A stretch of DNA of 64,000 bases from assembly GCA_021613535.1 (NCBI GenBank), contig CP075493.1:15252001-15316000 (forward strand), read 5' to 3'. Below are positions 5,001 through 29,226 of the stretch, in pieces. Origin of the DNA: Adineta vaga (lineage: Eukaryota; Animalia; Rotifera). The notes under the pieces were generated by a model, which searched no databases, was not told the origin of the DNA, and saw nothing but the letters and a program-made list of their open reading frames with translations. The translations under genes were made by a program, and so were the position numbers. Position 1 is the first letter of the stretch. Every line of letters begins with the position of its first letter.

Positions 5001-7860
5001 ATTCTAAATTCTTCTCTTCAAAATACAGGTTATCTACTTGTTAAAGTTGTCGATACTTCATTACAAACAATCTTCATTGGGTAAATTCTTTTCTCTAACG
5101 TCTCAATGAATAAATTATAAATTTTAGTTGTGTCATTGAAGCAATGTGTGTATCGAATAGTAATGAATTTCAACTTTTAAATCCAACAACTCAACTTGCT
5201 TTATTTTCCATCTGTGTTGAAAACTGTAACACAATAACAAATGAAAATATAACATGGAATGTTTATTATGGACAAATGAAGTCATCTTCAAAGAATATAA
5301 CTCAATGGACTTTATTTAATCAAACAAACAGTTGGTTTTTTGGTATAATAAATCACTTTTTTCTCTTCTATTGAAGCACATTGAATTTATTTAAGGTATG
5401 AATACAAGTAATATTACTGTTACAAATCAATTATTTCTCTCAAATCCACAAATAATTCTTTGGAAATTTGAAGTTATTTATAAATTTTCATCAGAAATAA
5501 GTTCAAGTTCGATAAATTTTCATCTCAATCAACCACCATCAAATGGTTCATGTTCAATTAATCCTTCTAATGGAACAATAAATGATTTGTTTACCATCAT
5601 GTGTCAGGATTGGTTTGATGAAAATGGAATTAAAGATTATATTCTCTACGGTATAAGTTGTTATACATTTCTTCTTCTATCAAAAAGAACTAAAATTTTC
5701 TTTTGAAAACAGGTTGGACAAATGATTCAACAAAGAAAATGATCATTGCCTATTCTTCCATATCAACATATCAAGTTCGATTACCTATAGGAGATAATCA
5801 AACATCTTTACTTCATTTAATTGTTCAAATTCGTGATCAATTAGATTGTATTATTGAATTGAATATTTCATCGGTTACTGTTCGACGAGATACAATAACG
5901 ATAAGTAATTTAATTAATGATATTCTTAATTCAACAACATCCATAATAAATCCTATAATTCAATTACTTAAAACTGAAAATCAAAATATAGTTGGACAAA
6001 TTTTAACATCACTTTCACAACAATTGAATGACATCAACGATGAAAATATTGATCAAGCTATTCTCAGTAATTGTGTTCATATGAATTGAAAATGATCATA
6101 ATTTATTCTTTTATAGATGGAATTCCAGCTCTAAGTATTTCTATCTCATCATTGGATGTACAAAATAAACAACAGATTCTTTCATTGAATCAATCAGCAT
6201 TAATAGAATATGAAAAAGTATTGAATTCTCATGCAATTCTTCGTGATTATCTAATGACATTTATTACTAAACTTCCAATAACAACATTAAATAGTATTAA
6301 ATTACAATCATCTTGTTTATCTCAATTAACAAAAGCAACGAATGAATTAACAAGATCAACTTTAGTAAGATCTCTATTTTCATTTCGATTGAAATGCAAT
6401 TTTTGTTATGTAGACAATTGCATCAAATCGATGCTATCAATTAGCGTTGGCTTTATATTCAATGAGAACACAAATTTCATATCAAGATATTCAATCAGTA
6501 TCAATTGATCTTATTCAATGTGCTTCGAATCTTCTAAGTGTAAGATAATCGTTTCTAACTTGTTCATCATCATCATCATTTCCCTTTGAATGAAATATCT
6601 ATTTAGGCTGTAAATGGACCATTACAACAACGAACAATGATCTTAGATTTGGATTCATTACGTGCTAATGCATTTCCTCAGGATTATGATACAGATCTTG
6701 AATCCGTTTGGTCAAATCCAAGTATTAAGATTTCATTTTATATCTTTATTGATCAAATTATAGAGACTATTTTTTAGATTTATTTTCTGATGGAAATGAT
6801 TTTTCAAGGGAAACTATAGAAAAGAATCGAAATCTTTATTATCAAAAACAAATCTCAAATGAAATTCTCAATCAAATCAATAAACTTATTTCATTAATAA
6901 CTTCATCATTAAATGTTCATTTAAATATTGGACAAGATTTTCTCATTGATCAATCACAAGTGTTCATGTCTCTACAAATGAAATCGATTGAAACATTTTC
7001 AAATTCATATACAAAACAAATTGGAAATGGTCAAATTCAACTTCCTCATAATTTCACTTCTTTTATTCCCGATATCAATGAAAAAATCTCTATTCGAGTA
7101 AATAATTTTCAATGAAGATAGAGACGATGAGATGAATTTTCCATTTTAGTCAATAATGGAACCATTAGCACCATTTGGTAATTCATTATTATCATCAAAT
7201 ACAAATCTTTCTCGATTAATTTCATTTTCTCTTCTTGATCAAAATCAAAATGAACTTTTCATAGAAACGAATGAGAACCAATCGATTGAAATCATCATTC
7301 CTCGTGATCCTAATCTTATTATTCCCTCAATGATCTCACAAAATGTTACTTCAATGAATTCAATACATCATAATCTTCTCTTTCATTATCATTATCTCAA
7401 TATCACATCAACTCATCCAATTTCGATTCATTGGCAAATTGAACCATTGAACATCAGTGTTGCTTACTTATTTATTTATAAATTTGATCAAATTCCACAA
7501 TTAAATAGTTCAATCAATGAAATTGATGGATGGACACTTTTTTGTCCATTTGATTTAACAAATGAAAGTATTTATCAATATTTTATTGATAATCAACATA
7601 CGGTAGATCATCAATCTATTATATTTGGTTTACGAGAATTGAATTCAACAGAAATCAATCGAGTGTGTGTAAATTCATCAACAAAATATCTTCCAATCAC
7701 CAATCAACGTTTTAATTTTACATCAAATTATCAAATGAGAATTTATACATCAGGTTGTTATTATCTTGATAAAATGAATCAATGGAAATCTGATGGATTA
7801 ATTGTTGGTTCATTAACAAATCTGTATCAAACTCAATGTTATTCAAATCATTTAAAATAG
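2021..7860 (+). CDS. Multi-exon secreted protein with two NHL beta-propellers, REJ (PKD1-like) and GAIN/GPS regions
   Basis: Signal-peptide exon 2021-2084 (MYIAIYSNLWLIIILFITETL), acceptor at 2191. NHL repeats (LNNPNGIFV..DLYVADSSNNRIQLF) occur in ORFs 2323-3150 and 3272-4738. REJ-like exons follow (NQPPSNGSCSINP, IVQIRDQLDC). The last exon is YTSGCYYLD..QWKSDGL..TQCYSNHLK-stop. Exon boundaries are only partly resolved. Confidence 0.8.
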
Positions 7861-8205: not shown

Positions 8206-10992
8206 ATGAATAAACTGACAAAAGTTCATATGCAAGATTTTTCTTTCCACGTTAATAATATTAGTGAACAAGCCTGTCGAAAACCTGTGGACAAGATCGT
8301 TTCTATTAGTGGTCTTTCTGGTTCAGATGGGTGTTCTGGCAAACCTGGATCGAACGGCATTTCTGGGAGAAGTAGTTCACACTTTAGCAAAGCTGGTGGT
8401 AATGGTGGCAGGGGTGCGAATGGATCAAATGGACAGTCAGGTAAATCTGGCACAAATTCTCACCATGCATTGATCCAATTAGATGGATCAGTTGAAAAAT
8501 TAAAGATGCAAGTAAAAAAATTTAAAACATTAGATACTTTTTTAAGGTGTTCTGCTGATGTCGACTGGAATCTTGGTAATCTCTCTGAAGATGATGAGTA
8601 TAGTTTTCAATTACGAGAATCAAAGAAAATCATCTTGGTGAAAGCTGTAGGAGGCGATGGAGGAACTGGAGGACAAGGAGGTGATGGAGGTAGAGGGGGC
8701 AATGGTGGGCATGGTGGTCCCGGTCGTAATGGAAAGAGGGGACAAGATATTCACAGTGAAGATAATTCTGCTGACAGTGGAAGCAATGGTGAAGACGGGG
8801 CACCTGGCGGTAATGGAGGCAATGGTGGAAGCGGTGGAAATGGAGGGAATGGCGGAGATGCAGGTGCTGGTGGTCATATTCAAGTTCGAAGCATAGATCC
8901 TAGATTATTTATGTTGATTGAAGTAGATTGTCAGGCAGGATTGCCAGGCAAAGGGGGTGAGGGTGGAAAAAGTGGTTCTAGTGGTACAGGTGGTGTAGGT
9001 GGAACAGGGGGTCGTGGTGGTAGAGGTGGTCAAAACTCGGCGCATAGCTTTAGTGCTTATGATGGTTCTTCTGGTGCTCAAGGTTCTAACGGAACGGATG
9101 GATCTGATGGTAAATCAGGCAAAGATGGTTTAGCTGGTGACGACGGTCGCATTGCAAATCATGGTTCAATTCAATACATTGTAATGAATATGAATGGCAA
9201 TGTTGCCGAGAAAGGATCAAATAAATATCACGCTACTGTTATTGATTATATTATAGTTGATGAAAATAAGGACAGTATTTATGAACCAAACTCGGATTTT
9301 TTTATTACAAATGTCAAATGGACAAATGATGGTTCAATAACTTTGCCTAGTGGATCTATATTATCATTTTCATCTACGAAATACATTTCTAATGACGTGG
9401 ATGACATTAGTTTATTGACACAGACTACCGTTAATCAAACATTTCTTAACTCTCACGAATTTCGATGCCATCTAAATGCGGTATCCATACCCACAATTAA
9501 TCGACCGTACATTCAGCCCGTAACAATAACATCAGAAATTAATCTATTCAATCGTTTACTTCCAGAAAGTCAATTTTCAACTACTTTCCTATGTCAATAT
9601 CCAATTCAAATTTCAAACATTGAAATTCCATCTTTTCTAGGCGTTGATGAACGAGGTATTATAACAATAACTTTTACTAATATTTCTACACGACCATATG
9701 GTACATGTCCAGATTCAGTTGGTTCAATAGAATTTATATTCTCAGTTCATCCTTTAATCAAAATCTTACCTCTGAACGAAAAATTTCTTTATCAAGTAAA
9801 GCGCGATGGAAACGGTTACTATAAAATCAATGAAAGAATTACATCTAAATCAACAAACTATATTAGTTTTGAATTTAGTTTAAATACCGATGCCGCTGAT
9901 CAACTTTATCAGAATTTACCTTGGAATGTTGTCTTATTGTTACGTAATATACCCATCCAAATGCATGAAAATAATATTCAAGTTGCACCATCATTTAGAC
10001 CAAATATACATACTGATGTTCTTCTAGTTACAAGTTCACAACTTACTCGAGCTGAATTTCTCATCTATATGAATTTATTTCGATTGTTTAATTATTCTAG
10101 TCAAATGTGGGATACGCAACGATACGGAGCATTTCATCATCCAGAAGTAAATTGGTTGAATACAACGAATTTGATTATTTTTCTTCATTCGAGTTCTCAA
10201 TTGACATTCAATGCAATAAATTCCCAATTACTTTTACAACATATGAATTCATCAGAGAATGCTGGTTTTATTTGTATGGATGCTCCTGAGTTGCATCCTT
10301 TTGATTTCATTGACATTATTTACGATGAAAAATATATATATAAATCCAATGTAAACGCTCATGTCCGTAACCGATTAATCATGATTCCAAGAGATAAACG
10401 TTTGCTAGCCAATGAGCACGTACCATTCATAATAACAAATGAGATCGACTTGAACTCACGATTTGGTAGATTAATAAGTGCTATATTGTTGTATCAAGGA
10501 TTTGAGAAATCATATAGAATTATCAACGAAAAATGGCAATTAGCAAATTGTATATTCATTTCAGATTCGATTCACTTGAATTTTAATCAAATATTAGTTA
10601 GTCTTGCTATGTCAATTATTCAATGTGAATATGATCGACACAGTCGGGAATTTCTATTATCAAAACGTTTGATAATGGAAATCACGAGGATCACTAAAAA
10701 CAGAAATAATACTACGAATGATGATTGGTTTTATTTATTGATTCAGTCGTTATACGAATATATTGACAGTAAATTTTGGAAATCTTTTCCTTGGTGTGGT
10801 TATACAAAGAAACCAAAGCAACGACATAAATTGCAGAAAATCATAAATAATTTATGTTCATTGTCAACAGTTAAAGTTCAGAAAAACAAAGAAATTTATC
10901 ATGAAGTACGACTTTTAAGACTACAAAGATTAGCGAAGTTACAGTTTTCAACAGCAGATGCGAAAGAAAATCGTACTCGATCGAAAAGATAA
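8206..10992 (+). CDS. 928-aa uncharacterised protein with Gly-rich GGxGGx repeats followed by beta-sandwich-like and alpha/beta regions
   Basis: Intronless ORF. GGNGGNGG blocks are interrupted by short globular linkers, then the motifs IVDENKDSIYEP and DVLLVT...WDTQRYG, which I recall from uncharacterised fungal/protist proteins (not verified). Confidence 0.7.
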   Translation: MNKLTKVHMQDFSFHVNNISEQACRKPVDKIVSISGLSGSDGCSGKPGSNGISGRSSSHFSKAGGNGGRGANGSNGQSGKSGTNSHHALIQLDGSVEKLKMQVKKFKTLDTFLRCSADVDWNLGNLSEDDEYSFQLRESKKIILVKAVGGDGGTGGQGGDGGRGGNGGHGGPGRNGKRGQDIHSEDNSADSGSNGEDGAPGGNGGNGGSGGNGGNGGDAGAGGHIQVRSIDPRLFMLIEVDCQAGLPGKGGEGGKSGSSGTGGVGGTGGRGGRGGQNSAHSFSAYDGSSGAQGSNGTDGSDGKSGKDGLAGDDGRIANHGSIQYIVMNMNGNVAEKGSNKYHATVIDYIIVDENKDSIYEPNSDFFITNVKWTNDGSITLPSGSILSFSSTKYISNDVDDISLLTQTTVNQTFLNSHEFRCHLNAVSIPTINRPYIQPVTITSEINLFNRLLPESQFSTTFLCQYPIQISNIEIPSFLGVDERGIITITFTNISTRPYGTCPDSVGSIEFIFSVHPLIKILPLNEKFLYQVKRDGNGYYKINERITSKSTNYISFEFSLNTDAADQLYQNLPWNVVLLLRNIPIQMHENNIQVAPSFRPNIHTDVLLVTSSQLTRAEFLIYMNLFRLFNYSSQMWDTQRYGAFHHPEVNWLNTTNLIIFLHSSSQLTFNAINSQLLLQHMNSSENAGFICMDAPELHPFDFIDIIYDEKYIYKSNVNAHVRNRLIMIPRDKRLLANEHVPFIITNEIDLNSRFGRLISAILLYQGFEKSYRIINEKWQLANCIFISDSIHLNFNQILVSLAMSIIQCEYDRHSREFLLSKRLIMEITRITKNRNNTTNDDWFYLLIQSLYEYIDSKFWKSFPWCGYTKKPKQRHKLQKIINNLCSLSTVKVQKNKEIYHEVRLLRLQRLAKLQFSTADAKENRTRSKR

Positions 10993-16920: not shown

Positions 16921-17430
16921 ATAATTTTAACATAATTACATTTGTATCCATTATATCAATATATTAATAAATCTTTCTATAGATTTACATGATAATAATG
17001 CGTGATCAGTATTGAAAGCTTGTCAATTATGAAAAACTTCTTTTTTTGTTTTCTACTTTATTTTTTGGTTTTTTAAAAACTCTTTCTATATCCCTAAATT
17101 GAATCCCATAAGACATGAAACGGAATTCGTCGGAATTCAGAATTTTAGGATTCCGCTCATTTCCCCTTGCAAGATGTGCAACTTTTTTTGAGTACAGCCG
17201 CATTTATTTATGTAATTGTATCTGTGTATGTGGAGACATTTTACGAAAACATAGAAGCTGATCCTCTTGATAGAGTAGAGGTTGATGTGTTTTTGAGAAT
17301 TTTATCTCTATTCGAAGTCAAACTAGGCATTTATTTATTGAAACGATCTAAACTAAACTCAATTTTCATCAGTTTATTTGTTTTTCAATTTGATGAATTT
17401 TCTGCGAAAGGGTTCGCTCGTTCTACAGTC

Positions 17431-19392
17431 TTATTTGTCGGCCTGATCTTCTTCCAGTGCATGATCCTGTACGACGTCTAACATTGCTTTCTTCTTCAGT
17501 TTGGCAATTATATCCATACGATTCTCACGTTCGATACGTTTGCTTGTGATACGCTCAGGATAACCACGAAGAAACATATTGGTGACGTGCTATAAATGGA
17601 GAAATACAAGTTAACATATAGAACAATAAAGACAATGGTGAAGAAAAGTGCACTGCTTCACTAAAGTCGTTACTATCATGAGTGATAACAGTCTGTCCGT
17701 ATATCGTACTTGTAATTAGTCCGGTTGGAGTTTCCTGATCAATCAGTCACAAATCATTCTTGATCTGTCTATGAAAGGTTGCTTGTGATACTCGTTTTTC
17801 AGACGCTAACAAATGAATCTACTGGAATATGATACTGAATTCTTCGAGTTAGTAGTCGCTGCTTCAAGTACGTAAAATCTAGATGGTTCAACTGGCAATG
17901 GATGACTCTTGCCAAACAAAAAGTGATTCTAAAAGTTTTCATAACGCCAACCACGAACTTCAAGATCATCTCGATGTGAAAAACGTTTAGTAAAACATTT
18001 CTTAGAAATTCTTTAACATTGATTCTTTTCGTCTCACACGGATGATAAGCGTATGAACTTTTAATTGAGTAGATTAACGATGATTTCATGTTACCTATAC
18101 CGAATAATATCAGTCGAACTTTATAAAAAGATTGTTACTTCCACAAAAACCTTTATTCCTCCCCTATGAAAAATTGACATAAACAAAACTTTTGCTGAAC
18201 AAACTGATGATAGATTCGGATTTTCCATTCTGAATAATTCTTGATCAAACAATGGCTGTTGATGTCTGTGACGATGCTTCTTTGACCTTTGACTTACGAT
18301 ACATTACAGACAAACAAACTCTGTATAATTGTTTTCTGTGTCACACTCTCTTCAGTGGAAAAAACGACAACTTTATCTATTACTTACTTCTCCATAGTGT
18401 ACGAAGTCTGTGGCATCTGTCTTGTTGACTGATTTAATGATTTGCTGAAAATTTGGTTCATGAAAGTATGCAATAGAATACCGCTCTTTTTCAGCACGGT
18501 GTACCTTGTGAGGAGTAGAGAGAAGCACACCATCAGTAAGTAGTTGAAACATGTCGCCCGGAAATACTGTTAGAGCAGACGGGGTTGGTTTAACAAAGTT
18601 CCACTCTACACAATCTTCATACATTCCAGCAGAGGATTCTGACGGCAACCAGTTACGATTACGAATCTCTTTATCAATGGGAGGTCGAATAAACAAACCA
18701 CCAGCGTCGTCTTGCGTAACAATGACGAGAAGCCCATAGTCTGTATGCGAACCAGTTCCACGAGACGACTCAGAAGAAATAGGAGGGTATCGAAGAACAC
18801 GTGCATGATGCCAGCCATCGTTAGCTATAGACTTGAGAGAATTGATATCCGGAAGATTAAGTCCCAGAGAAATGAGTTGCAAGATGCGGTCACCGATAGA
18901 TCCAAGCTTGATCAAAAAGTTCTGAAGAGCCTTCTTGTAGGAAAGACTAGGCCACGGAACGGGACCGTGCCCCGGCCATCTATCTTGTACACGTTTATCA
19001 TTCAGAGACAAATCTTTAACAATAGTAAAAATTTCGCTGTAGTCGGCTTCACCTGCTGTTAATTCCTCTCCACTAGCAATGTAACCTGCAAAAGTGAGAT
19101 CGGACACATATGACATTTTTTCGGCCATAGGGCGTAAGAAGAATTTACGAGACGCTTCCAACGCCAGTTGTGAGGACGTACATACATCTGGAGTACATGC
19201 GACTTGAAACATACCCTGTGTCTTCCACTCTAACACCATAGTTTGGCCCAACTCAATATCTGTTGTATTGCCAACAACTACTGGCGGGATATGAAACGTT
19301 TTTAGATTTGCGATACGGCTGAGTCTACGAGACCATTCAGTTTCATATGCAATTTCACTTGAAGTTGATAAATTGTTCGAATCACCAATCAT
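17431..19392 (-). CDS. efe: 2-oxoglutarate/Fe(II)-dependent ethylene/succinate-forming enzyme homolog (2 exons: 19392-18388, 17589-17431)
   Basis: Colinear with Pseudomonas syringae EFE as I recall it: NLKTF..P, SDLTFAGYIASGEELTAG, WPGHGPVPWP, DGWHHARVLRYPP, HTDYGLLVI, RNRNWLPSESSAGM, LLSTPHKV, AYFHEPNF, HYGE. Donor GTAAGT at 18387, acceptor at 17590. Exon 2 encodes HVTNMFLRGYPERITSKRIERENR, the EFE C-terminus. Confidence 0.92.
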
Positions 19393-19578
19393 CCGTTTAA
19401 TCTCGAAAACAAAACATGATACGCTAATTGATCATCACATTTACACATACACACATAAATGTCATATGATTTGGACACCCGAAGAAGAGTCCTTTTTTCC
19501 CGCACAGCAGAATGTCTGAGCGAGGAATATTATTTAAAAGCTTTTATCAGCAAGATGAAAATTATGTAGATATCTTCC

Positions 19579-24382: not shown

Positions 24383-25144
24383 AATGGCGAACTAGTATAC
24401 GCAGTCCACACTCTAAAGGAGCGTCTTGACCTTCGTCCGTCTATTGAAGAACTTAATGAGATTTCATGGCCTAAGTTTTTAGCTCAAGACATTGTTACGA
24501 ATGCTGCTTGGGACATATTATTTAAAGAATGGAGCGAATATCAAGTAGTGATCGTGAGTAGCGATAAAAGCAAGCTCATAGGTGTTGGATTAACAGTCCC
24601 AATACATTGGGATGGTAGTATAGAAACATTACCTTCCGGCTGGGAAGCTGCTACTCAACAAGGATTAGACGATCTAACTGCTGGGAAGAAGCCTACAGCA
24701 CTCTCTGCATTCGCAATTATGGTAGAACCCCAAATGCAGAAGCAGGGCATTAGTGCGCTTATTCTTAAAACAATACTAAAAGTAAGTTACCAGCATGGTT
24801 TCCATTCGTTTGCTGTCAACGTCCGTCCAATTCTCAAGACCAGATATCCGTTGATTCCTGTTGAAAAATACGCCCAGTGGACAAACGACAATGAAGAACC
24901 ATTTGATCCTTGGATACGAGTGCATTTCCGAGCAGGTGCAAAAGTCGTATGTGTTTCACCACATGCCGTCATTGTGAAAGGAACGGTTATTCAGTGGAAG
25001 GAATGGACTGACATGGAATTTCCTGATGATGGACAATATATAGTTAGCGGTGCTCTGACACCTATTACTATAGATCACAAACATGACCTCGGCATTTACT
25101 TCGAGCCCGCTGTCTGGATGATTCACTCTATCAATCCTTCTTGA
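24383..25144 (+). CDS. Bacterial-type GNAT-family N-acetyltransferase (5' exon not located)
   Basis: The frame opens after an acceptor (ttttag) at 24382. It reads TLKERLDLR..WPKFL..WSEYQ..VPIHWDG..LPSGW..VEPQMQKQGIS (acetyl-CoA motif A)..VRPILKTRYPL..FDPWIRVH..WTDMEFPDDGQYIVSGAL..EPAVW. Confidence 0.8.
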   Translation, partial: NGELVYAVHTLKERLDLRPSIEELNEISWPKFLAQDIVTNAAWDILFKEWSEYQVVIVSSDKSKLIGVGLTVPIHWDGSIETLPSGWEAATQQGLDDLTAGKKPTALSAFAIMVEPQMQKQGISALILKTILKVSYQHGFHSFAVNVRPILKTRYPLIPVEKYAQWTNDNEEPFDPWIRVHFRAGAKVVCVSPHAVIVKGTVIQWKEWTDMEFPDDGQYIVSGALTPITIDHKHDLGIYFEPAVWMIHSINPS

Positions 25145-28132: not shown

Positions 28133-28227
28133 ATGGTATCTTCTTATGGAAATCTTTTTCTCAGCAGAATCTATATTAATATTTGTTAATTATAGAATTG
28201 TTTTAATAAAACTTCTTTTTTTTCGTT

Positions 28228-29226
28228 ATGTCGACATTCAATAATACTACCACATCAACAATGGCTCCTTTCATTCCTACTACTCGACCTATTCAATTTA
28301 GTATTTTATTAACATTTGCAATCTTTTCTTTACCATGCTCTATTTTTGTTCTTCACCATTTCTTATCAAAAAAAATTCTTTATCGTGCTGTCAACAATCA
28401 TGTTATTATTCTTTTGCTTATGAGTAATTGTCTTCAAACTCTAACTGATGTTCCAGTGCAGCTCAGTTACTATCTGTTAGGTATAAATTGGCCCCTGACA
28501 CTCAGTTATTGTTATTACTTTTATTTTATTGATTTTTATCTATTTACAACATGCTTTTTACTTTTAAGCTGGTCATCATTTGAACGACATATTTTGATTT
28601 TTCATGGATATGTCTTCAACACACATCGTAAACGTGTAATTTATCATTATATTCCTTTAATATTTTGCATAACTTATCCAATGATTTATTATGTTTACTT
28701 TATATTTTTCTATCCATGTGTGAATTACTATGATGAATATACATCATATTGTGTTCCAGCGTGTTATTTGAGAACAAATGCTGTGATGGCTTTGTATGAA
28801 CAGATTGTTCATGGATTTGCTTTAATGTTTATTATCTTCATTTTCAATGTAATATTATTTGTTCGAGTAGTTCAACACAAAACTCGAATGGGTAGACAAA
28901 TGACATGGAAAAAGAATCGTAAGATGGCAGTGCAATTATTTAGCATGTGTTTTTTGTTTTTCCTAACGAATACCGGTTATTTTGTCGTTCAAATAGGACA
29001 AATGCTATATGATCCAAACTTTGGAGTAAGTTTCAGTCAATGGGCGATTCCAATAGCTATGAGTATGCCTCCACTCTTTCCATTTGTATGTCTTAGTACT
29101 TTGGATGATTTACATGCCAAACTGCAAAAAGTAATTCATTGGCGAAATCGTCGTATCGTAGTACCTATTACAGGCACACAATTACGACAAGTGCCAATGA
29201 CAAATTCGAGACGTCATAATGTCTAG
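28228..29226 (+). CDS. Orphan rhodopsin-like 7TM GPCR
   Basis: Seven hydrophobic segments with NNHVII, WSSFERHILIFH, HYIPL and KNRKMAVQL motifs; intronless. Confidence 0.85.
   Translation: MSTFNNTTTSTMAPFIPTTRPIQFSILLTFAIFSLPCSIFVLHHFLSKKILYRAVNNHVIILLLMSNCLQTLTDVPVQLSYYLLGINWPLTLSYCYYFYFIDFYLFTTCFLLLSWSSFERHILIFHGYVFNTHRKRVIYHYIPLIFCITYPMIYYVYFIFFYPCVNYYDEYTSYCVPACYLRTNAVMALYEQIVHGFALMFIIFIFNVILFVRVVQHKTRMGRQMTWKKNRKMAVQLFSMCFLFFLTNTGYFVVQIGQMLYDPNFGVSFSQWAIPIAMSMPPLFPFVCLSTLDDLHAKLQKVIHWRNRRIVVPITGTQLRQVPMTNSRRHNV

Follow-up and report, generated by a model that had tools for sequence, protein, structure and literature searches.

Can an animal own an ethylene-forming enzyme (EFE) and, if so, would this enzyme make ethylene? 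The question is raised by a gene on the minus strand of chromosome 1 in Adineta vaga, a bdelloid rotifer, at positions 17431-19392 of a stretch of 64,000 nucleotides that we call the window (C1:15,252,001-15,316,000 of a 100.8-Mb, six-piece assembly) and whose coordinates are used below. EFE has been intensively studied as a route to bio-ethylene and, lately, also to 3-hydroxypropionate (3-HP), and what makes it form ethylene is an unsettled question in the field, on which the Adineta proteins bear. Horizontal gene transfer (HGT) into bdelloids is commonplace. The best explanation overall, to which we give a probability of about 0.6, is that the locus holds a domesticated EFE gene acquired by HGT, in which the cage around 2-oxoglutarate (2OG) was rebuilt in Adineta, and whose product would form little ethylene. 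What is new is an EFE in an animal, together with a naturally occurring deviation, maintained by selection, from an otherwise invariant A198/F175/I186 cage (residues are numbered as in PsEFE, the enzyme of Pseudomonas savastanoi/syringae, and were counted on the natively numbered chain 22nw_A). Full-text literature searches on EFE with rotifer, bdelloid or metazoan HGT returned nothing on this topic.

Gene structure and catalytic residues

A preliminary description of the window, made from the sequence, had proposed a gene of two exons, with a second exon of 52 residues behind a 798-bp GT-AG intron, and its coordinates match exactly those found here. Exon 1 (18388..19392, minus strand) holds the start and 335 codons, which correspond to PsEFE residues 2-308 plus an N-terminal extension of about 27 aa; it is contained in an open reading frame (ORF) of 339 codons present in the ORF list (18373-19392, minus strand). 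The codons for H-Y-G-E at 18399-18388 close the exon, and the donor GT at 18387/18386 adjoins them. The phase-0 spliceosomal intron (17590..18387, minus strand, 798 nt, GTAAGT...TTTATAG) ends with the acceptor AG at 17591/17590, behind a T-rich tract, and the frame picks up at 17589. Exon 2 (17431..17589, minus strand) adds 52 codons and the stop TAA at 17433-17431; it corresponds to PsEFE from residue 309 onwards and encodes the C-terminal helix with R316 and Y318, bringing the predicted protein to 387 aa. An AATAAA polyadenylation signal (17373..17378, minus strand) follows 53-58 nt past the stop codon, and the 3' flank at 17280-17405 is conserved with Adineta ricciae. A transposon origin of the long intron was considered and rejected, since its sequence is unique in the A. 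vaga genome and without notable repeats. Its last ~80 nt (17590-17670, minus strand) can be aligned with positions 7175-7255 of the A. ricciae contig L004, despite a threefold difference in intron length, and may be a conserved branch-point/polypyrimidine region or a regulatory element.

The two-exon structure corrects the deposited A. vaga model I4U23_005040 (358 aa), whose first 335 residues are 100% identical to exon 1 and whose last exon, of 23 aa (17929..18000, minus strand), lies inside the 798-nt intron. The C-terminus encoded by these 23 codons (18000-17929) differs from that of EFE homologues; the alternative exon shows no EFE similarity and no conservation in A. ricciae, and no contig of the sequencing runs X1 and X6, described below, falls on it. 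The 3' end of the deposited model is probably wrong, or else a minor isoform. Among the deposited or called models, exon 2 is present only in the A. ricciae protein P0312; the A. ricciae proteins P0002 and P0311, the Logan-called P0003 and the Rotaria protein P0004 likewise miss it, by read-through or truncation. A genomic contig of run X4 departs from the reference at 17929 and continues as units of the TGAGGG/TGTGGG type; the other haplotype may have a structural variant here, or a junction with a repeat.

Four runs could be placed on the stretch as Logan contigs, two of which, X3 and X4, are plainly genomic. The contigs of X6 (2018) lie only at 17437-17587 and 18823-19404, with none on the intron, the flanks or the alternative exon, and X1 (2022) has a single contig of 201 nt, which matches 17395-17589, ends precisely where the acceptor begins and leaves 6 letters unplaced. 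This exon-only pattern fits a two-exon transcript. No run on record as RNA contains the EFE stretch. The RNA status of X1 and X6 is a guess, and among the four runs no A. vaga read or contig goes across the exon joint.

Homology was evident in both exons. Exon 1 carries the Pfam domains DIOX_N (PF14226, E 1.2e-10) and 2OG-FeII_Oxy (PF03171, E 2.8e-15), each of which exceeds its gathering cut-off, and phmmer aligned it with the PsEFE chains of the Protein Data Bank (PDB) across residues 2-308 with E 6e-111; the fungal enzyme 9EIR followed with E 3.5e-91, and the first non-EFE oxygenase structure reached only E 1e-18. NCBIfam gave no model for the A. vaga protein. Exon 2 alone matched residues 311-348 of a bacterial EFE by BLASTP (50% identity, E 2e-13) and, in a comparison with 195 microbial EFEs, aligned ungapped with PsEFE 309-338, matching the invariant residues H309, T311, M313, F314, R316, Y318, P319, R321, R326, E330 and R332; taken together, its matches cover EFE residues 309-346. 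The orthologue P0312 (383 aa = 335 + 48) has the same exon junction and aligns straight through it with PsEFE 3-345 (E 1.5e-123). The tree, too, groups the rotifer sequences among the EFEs, well separated from the oxygenases of the outgroup.

The catalytic apparatus is complete. The Fe(II) triad H189, D191 and H268, the 2OG carboxylate binders R171 and R277, as well as F283, and the L-Arg set E84, T86, Y192, R316 and Y318, the last two in exon 2, are all kept in A. vaga. On chain 22nw_A and in the exon 2 alignment we thus confirmed the iron ligands, the 2OG- and Arg-binding arginines and the F283 equivalent as the preliminary description had read them. The valine that it had placed at the A198 equivalent was found there also by a hand count on the same chain and in the column tables (codon GTT, 18718..18720, minus strand), with a threonine at position 199. 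Since metal ligands and 2OG/L-Arg residues are intact, the enzyme would be expected to bind Fe(II), 2OG and L-Arg like PsEFE, to activate O2 and to decarboxylate 2OG. We have very little doubt that this is a real, functional, horizontally acquired gene of the EFE family.

Integration, selection and origin in bdelloid rotifers

The nearest relatives of the gene outside the rotifers are bacterial, as would be the case if the sequence stemmed from contamination by a bacterium or fungus, or from a chimeric assembly, a risk that the preliminary description had itself raised. We dismiss this explanation and regard its likelihood as negligible. The gene is located 15.27 Mb into an 18.1-Mb chromosome, near ORFs for G protein-coupled receptors (GPCRs) of the rhodopsin type, and microsynteny is kept with A. 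ricciae, where the EFE gene likewise stands head-to-head with a GNAT-like gene and has the same GPCR nearby. The GC content at third codon positions, 0.36, resembles that of the host, and the exons have 42-43% GC, compared with 32-34% in the flanks and the intron. Independent DNA runs of 2013 cover exons, intron and flanks continuously and with two haplotypes, whose listed differences in the exons are 6, 4 of them synonymous. Finally, the spliceosomal intron is conserved in four rotifer assemblies. Chromosome context, synteny and intron all bear out the earlier proposal that the EFE gene is embedded in an animal gene structure.

Orthologues were found in A. ricciae (L004; exon 1 77% identical to that of A. 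vaga, intron of 250 nt), in the Logan contig L005 (67%, 205 nt) and in Rotaria sp. Silwood1 (L006; 67%, 288 nt); the last two are referred to here as Rotaria-type. In all three, exon 1 ends with Y-G-E and is followed by a GT...AG intron at the A. vaga position and by a homologous exon 2, so that the intron position is common to four bdelloid orthologues, A. vaga included. The intron predates the split between Adineta and the Rotaria-type lineage because it is present at the same position in both. The ratio of nonsynonymous to synonymous substitution rates (dN/dS) in exon 1 was 0.21 between A. vaga and A. ricciae and 0.15 between L005 and Rotaria; selection has preserved the gene on either side of the split. 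By protein and DNA searches, the haploid assembly of A. vaga contains one EFE copy. A candidate second copy, the 95.5%-identical FUN_004992, was rejected, as the header of the published table that had suggested it shows only a correspondence of identifiers between AV19 and AV20. A. ricciae has three or more intact copies, and position 198 is Ile in each of them.

As for the donor, the hits listed beyond the four rotifer clusters are for the most part metagenome proteins without names; those that do carry a name are bacterial and 54-60% identical, from Frankia, Streptomyces-related actinomycetes, Microcoleus, Pseudomonas and others. The 50%-identity representatives that were looked up are bacterial (Streptomyces, cyanobacteria), fungal or from metagenomes, and no other animal protein occurs in the best 120 word-search hits or in these representatives; weaker hits were not inspected. 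A maximum-likelihood tree of 49 rows unites the four rotifer sequences in a single clade (100/100), whose sister group is Kibdelosporangium/Actinocrispum/Rhodococcus (96/88), inside the actinomycetes; the fungi branch elsewhere. A fungal donor is disfavoured by the lower identity of the fungal EFE of Colletotrichum to the rotifer protein (44-47%) and by four indels that mark the fungal EFEs, at which the rotifers show the bacterial state. On the other hand, the bacterial reading has to contend with the long rotifer stem branch (0.87) and with an approximately unbiased (AU) test in which a clade of rotifers plus fungi was not rejected (p = 0.43). Thus, the phylogeny with bacterial and fungal EFEs suggested in the preliminary description placed the rotifers with a bacterial, actinomycete group in the tree, but the AU test did not reject the fungal grouping. 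A bacterium, perhaps an actinomycete with a Pseudonocardiaceae-like nearest group, is the most likely donor, though not a proven one. From it, the gene would have entered the bdelloid lineage before Adineta and the Rotaria-type diverged; it then took on the base composition of the host, acquired a phase-0 intron behind the equivalent of PsEFE E308, and has remained under purifying selection.

The gene has already been listed, under other names, in a published table. It corresponds to FUN_000516 in AV19 and FUN_004992 in AV20, flagged as HGT in Table S1 of PMC10809525, where it appears by its BLAST hits only ('isopenicillin N synthase family oxygenase'), with the same Pfam pair and with Pseudomonas fuscovaginae and Scytonema as best hits, and was not recognised as EFE. 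In the same table, its mean normalised RNA-seq count in whole animals is ~1.1, a very low value that puts its physiological weight in some doubt, the log2 fold change on entry into desiccation is -0.08, and the values after X-ray irradiation and rehydration are negative or non-significant (PMC10809525). In whole animals its expression is very weak, and it does not belong to the genes that respond to desiccation. The link to proline and desiccation drawn in the preliminary description therefore finds no support in these data.

The surroundings of the gene deserve some observations of their own. The gene head-to-head with EFE (24383-25144, plus strand) is 76% conserved with L004 3706-4392 (minus strand) and only weakly GNAT-like, with Acetyltransf_1 E values of 0.02 and 7e-4, below threshold. 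It is probably FUN_000515, flagged as HGT with Aneurinibacillus GNAT hits (PMC10809525 Table S1). A co-transfer of this neighbour with EFE was rejected, as no homologue lies within 3 kb of 80 bacterial EFE genes. The GPCR gene at 28199-29221 (plus strand) is syntenic with L004 9151-10173, but on the opposite side of the EFE gene, which indicates a local rearrangement since the A. vaga/A. ricciae split. Further away, an intronless ORF of 928 aa (8206-10992, plus strand), in a GC-rich (41%) and strongly G-skewed kilobase, carries the Pfam domain DUF7932 (E 6e-30) and a Gly-rich, collagen-like stretch with a weak NCBIfam SclB match, and may be another foreign gene. In A. ricciae, 5 kb from the EFE orthologue, L004 1-922 (minus strand) encodes a fused P450/flavodoxin/FAD/NAD reductase with a CYP102-like architecture, typical of microbial genes.

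The 2OG cage of the Adineta enzymes and its predicted products

In the Pseudomonas enzyme, 2OG sits in a hydrophobic cage made of L173, F175, I186, V196, A198, L206, F250, V270, A279, A281 and F283 (PMC11025135, PMC13760634). To see how far the rotifer proteins depart from it, they were compared with 202 core EFEs (116 database hits, 80 genes from named bacterial genomes and 6 from fungi). Position 198 is Ala in 201 of these 202 and in both Rotaria-type orthologues, but A. vaga has Val there and A. ricciae Ile. All 202 have F175 and I186, position 203 is Val in 196 of them, and the Rotaria-type orthologues keep A198, F175, I186 and V203, whereas both Adineta species carry F175Y, I186T, V203A and A279S besides A198V/I; the departures at 175, 186, 198 and 203 are found in Adineta only. 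Four of the eleven cage residues are thus changed in A. vaga (F175Y, I186T, A198V, A279S), whose cage is no longer strictly hydrophobic, while that of the Rotaria-type orthologues is. Exon 2 of both Adineta species adds F310V, C317G and T324S at otherwise invariant sites. M170A and A199T are present in all the rotifer copies, and the Rotaria-type proteins have the full canonical set except for W113V/I. When 118 conserved columns of exon 1 were considered, three of the five Adineta-specific changes fell in the 10 cage columns (hypergeometric p = 0.004, to be read as descriptive, being post hoc).

Across the 202 microbial EFEs the 2OG cage hardly varies, which makes the Adineta proteins rare natural departures from it. 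The changes are common to both Adineta species and were therefore fixed before A. vaga and A. ricciae split, and then maintained. In their common ancestor the cage would have been rebuilt through A198V/I, F175Y, I186T and A279S, and V203A, together with F310V and C317G in the Arg-side helix, would have changed in the same ancestor. Non-EFE relatives among the 2OG oxygenases carry Y175, L198 and S279, so that the residues found in Adineta approach the pattern of a generic hydroxylase.

An alternative is that the pocket changes are simple decay, in a nearly silent relic under relaxed constraint that is drifting to loss. The mean count of ~1.1 without stress response, the single copy in the haploid A. 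vaga assembly and the number of changes at conserved columns (11-12 in Adineta and 6-7 in the Rotaria-type, about double) would agree with this. However, neither exon is damaged in any of the four species, nor in three or more copies of A. ricciae, dN/dS between the Adineta species is 0.21, the splice sites and the polyadenylation signal are kept, and the cage changes were fixed before the split and then maintained, so that we judge a relic to be highly improbable.

What a rebuilt cage would mean for the products can be predicted from single-site variants of the Pseudomonas enzyme. For PsEFE A198V, less than 5% ethylene and about 60% of the hydroxylation were reported (PMC11668244), or a conversion of most 2OG to 3-HP with little Arg hydroxylation and trace ethylene (PMC12060275), and A198V is among the variants that keep the formation of pyrroline-5-carboxylate (P5C) but lose ethylene (PMC10467617), in line with the effect stated in the preliminary description. 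A198L gave 58-66% 3-HP, and the branch point between ethylene and 3-HP was ascribed to contacts of L173, I186 and A198 with succinyl/propionyl radicals (PMC11931567). The hydrophobicity of the pocket is also regarded as key to ethylene formation (PMC10467617). Since A198V alone nearly abolishes ethylene in the Pseudomonas enzyme, we infer that the A. vaga enzyme would make little of it. In Adineta, a bulkier residue 198 in a more polar cage would disfavour the fragmentation that yields ethylene, and the 2OG flux would be directed to the ferryl route, with C5-hydroxylation of L-Arg giving guanidine, P5C and succinate, and/or to a carbonato intermediate giving 3-HP. By this analogy, a product profile shifted away from ethylene appears somewhat better supported than its contrary. 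The preliminary description had offered two outcomes, an ethylene-producing animal or a variant shifted to Arg hydroxylation. The second gains from the rarity of changes at A198, with Val or Ile found only in Adineta and accompanied by other cage changes, but 3-HP had not been considered, and neither outcome had taken into account compensating changes that might restore ethylene formation.

Such compensation is the core of a further explanation, according to which the A. vaga enzyme is still a true EFE, the Adineta substitutions repack the cage with the outcome unchanged, and the animal produces ethylene. Here the side-chain volumes tell against a shifted product: A198V adds 51 cubic angstroms and I186T and V203A remove 51 each, so that they nearly cancel and a compensation preserving ethylene formation is therefore possible. 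Summed over five pocket-region substitutions the change is small (-46 cubic angstroms for A. vaga, -20 for A. ricciae), residues 186 and 198 contact the same succinyl/propionyl intermediates (PMC11931567), all the catalytic, 2OG- and Arg-binding residues are kept, and purifying selection is maintained. Nevertheless, A198V on its own nearly abolishes ethylene (PMC11668244, PMC12060275), Y175, T186 and S279 bring hydroxyls into a pocket whose hydrophobicity is key (PMC10467617), and the new states, at sites invariant in the 202 microbial EFEs, resemble those of ordinary 2OG hydroxylases. An unchanged outcome thus seems to us rather unlikely, although the most plausible of the alternatives.

The substitutions in exon 2 could also suggest that the Adineta enzyme has switched its prime substrate from free L-arginine to a guanidino or other compound. 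The C-terminal helix shapes the Arg pocket, and F310V, C317G and T324S, at invariant sites in it, occur in Adineta only; the L-Arg pocket is defined by Y306 and Y192, on which F310 packs (PMC11025135). But the direct L-Arg ligands E84, T86, D191, Y192, R316 and Y318 are kept, and the locus suggests no alternative substrate, its GNAT-like gene being without counterpart beside bacterial EFE genes. A switch of substrate is accordingly a poor candidate, little better than decay.

We return to the rebuilt cage with little ethylene as the preferred reading for Adineta. The Rotaria-type orthologues, judged by their sequences, have a canonical cage and may be true ethylene formers; with the canonical set kept apart from W113V/I, an animal enzyme that forms ethylene is better sought among them. 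It is tempting to combine the two, with bdelloids holding the first animal EFEs, those of the Rotaria-type making ethylene and those of Adineta re-specified to 3-HP and/or guanidine plus P5C through a concerted change of the cage; we propose this only tentatively, the odds being somewhat against the scenario as a whole. If true, the comparison of Adineta with the Rotaria-type would be a natural experiment on the residues that set the branch between ethylene and hydroxylation/3-HP, in which Adineta joins the ethylene-killing A198V/I with partner substitutions so far unexplored by anyone. For rotifer biology, a defined enzymatic capability is added to the foreign genes of bdelloids, possibly the production of ethylene, guanidine or 3-HP in an animal.

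Comparison with known ethylene-forming enzymes

To our knowledge, the only other eukaryotic EFEs are those of fungi (Penicillium digitatum Pd1, PDB 9EIR; Colletotrichum P0147), which share with the rotifer proteins the canonical catalytic set and an N-terminal extension. They differ in two inserts (5 aa and 4 aa) and two deletions (1 aa and 2 aa), none of which occurs in rotifers or bacteria; they keep A198, F175 and I186, unlike Adineta, and stand apart from the rotifers in the tree. The other HGT genes of bdelloids (PMC10809525, PMC4632278) resemble the EFE gene in their non-metazoan origin, host-like composition, acquired intron and presence in several genera. However, PMC10809525 draws attention to 2OG oxygenases that are induced by stress, whereas the EFE gene of A. 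vaga shows hardly any expression and no induction.

The closest system of reference is PsEFE itself (PDB 5V2Y, 5LUN, 6VP4), with ~56% identity over the whole length, the same two Pfam domains, H189/D191/H268, R171/R277, E84/T86/Y192/R316/Y318 and the C-terminal helix in common. The rotifer gene is distinguished by the intron after the E308 equivalent and by the ~27-aa N-terminal extension common to the rotifer orthologues, the Adineta proteins by F175Y, I186T, A198V, A279S, V203A, F310V and C317G, and all rotifers by M170A and A199T. The engineered PsEFE variants A198V and A198L come near to Adineta, where V (A. vaga) or I (A. ricciae) likewise puts a larger aliphatic side chain at position 198, but they carry a single change, and give mostly 3-HP, some P5C and <5% ethylene (PMC11668244, PMC12060275, PMC11931567). 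Unlike these engineered variants, the Adineta proteins combine the change at 198 with I186T, V203A, F175Y and A279S.

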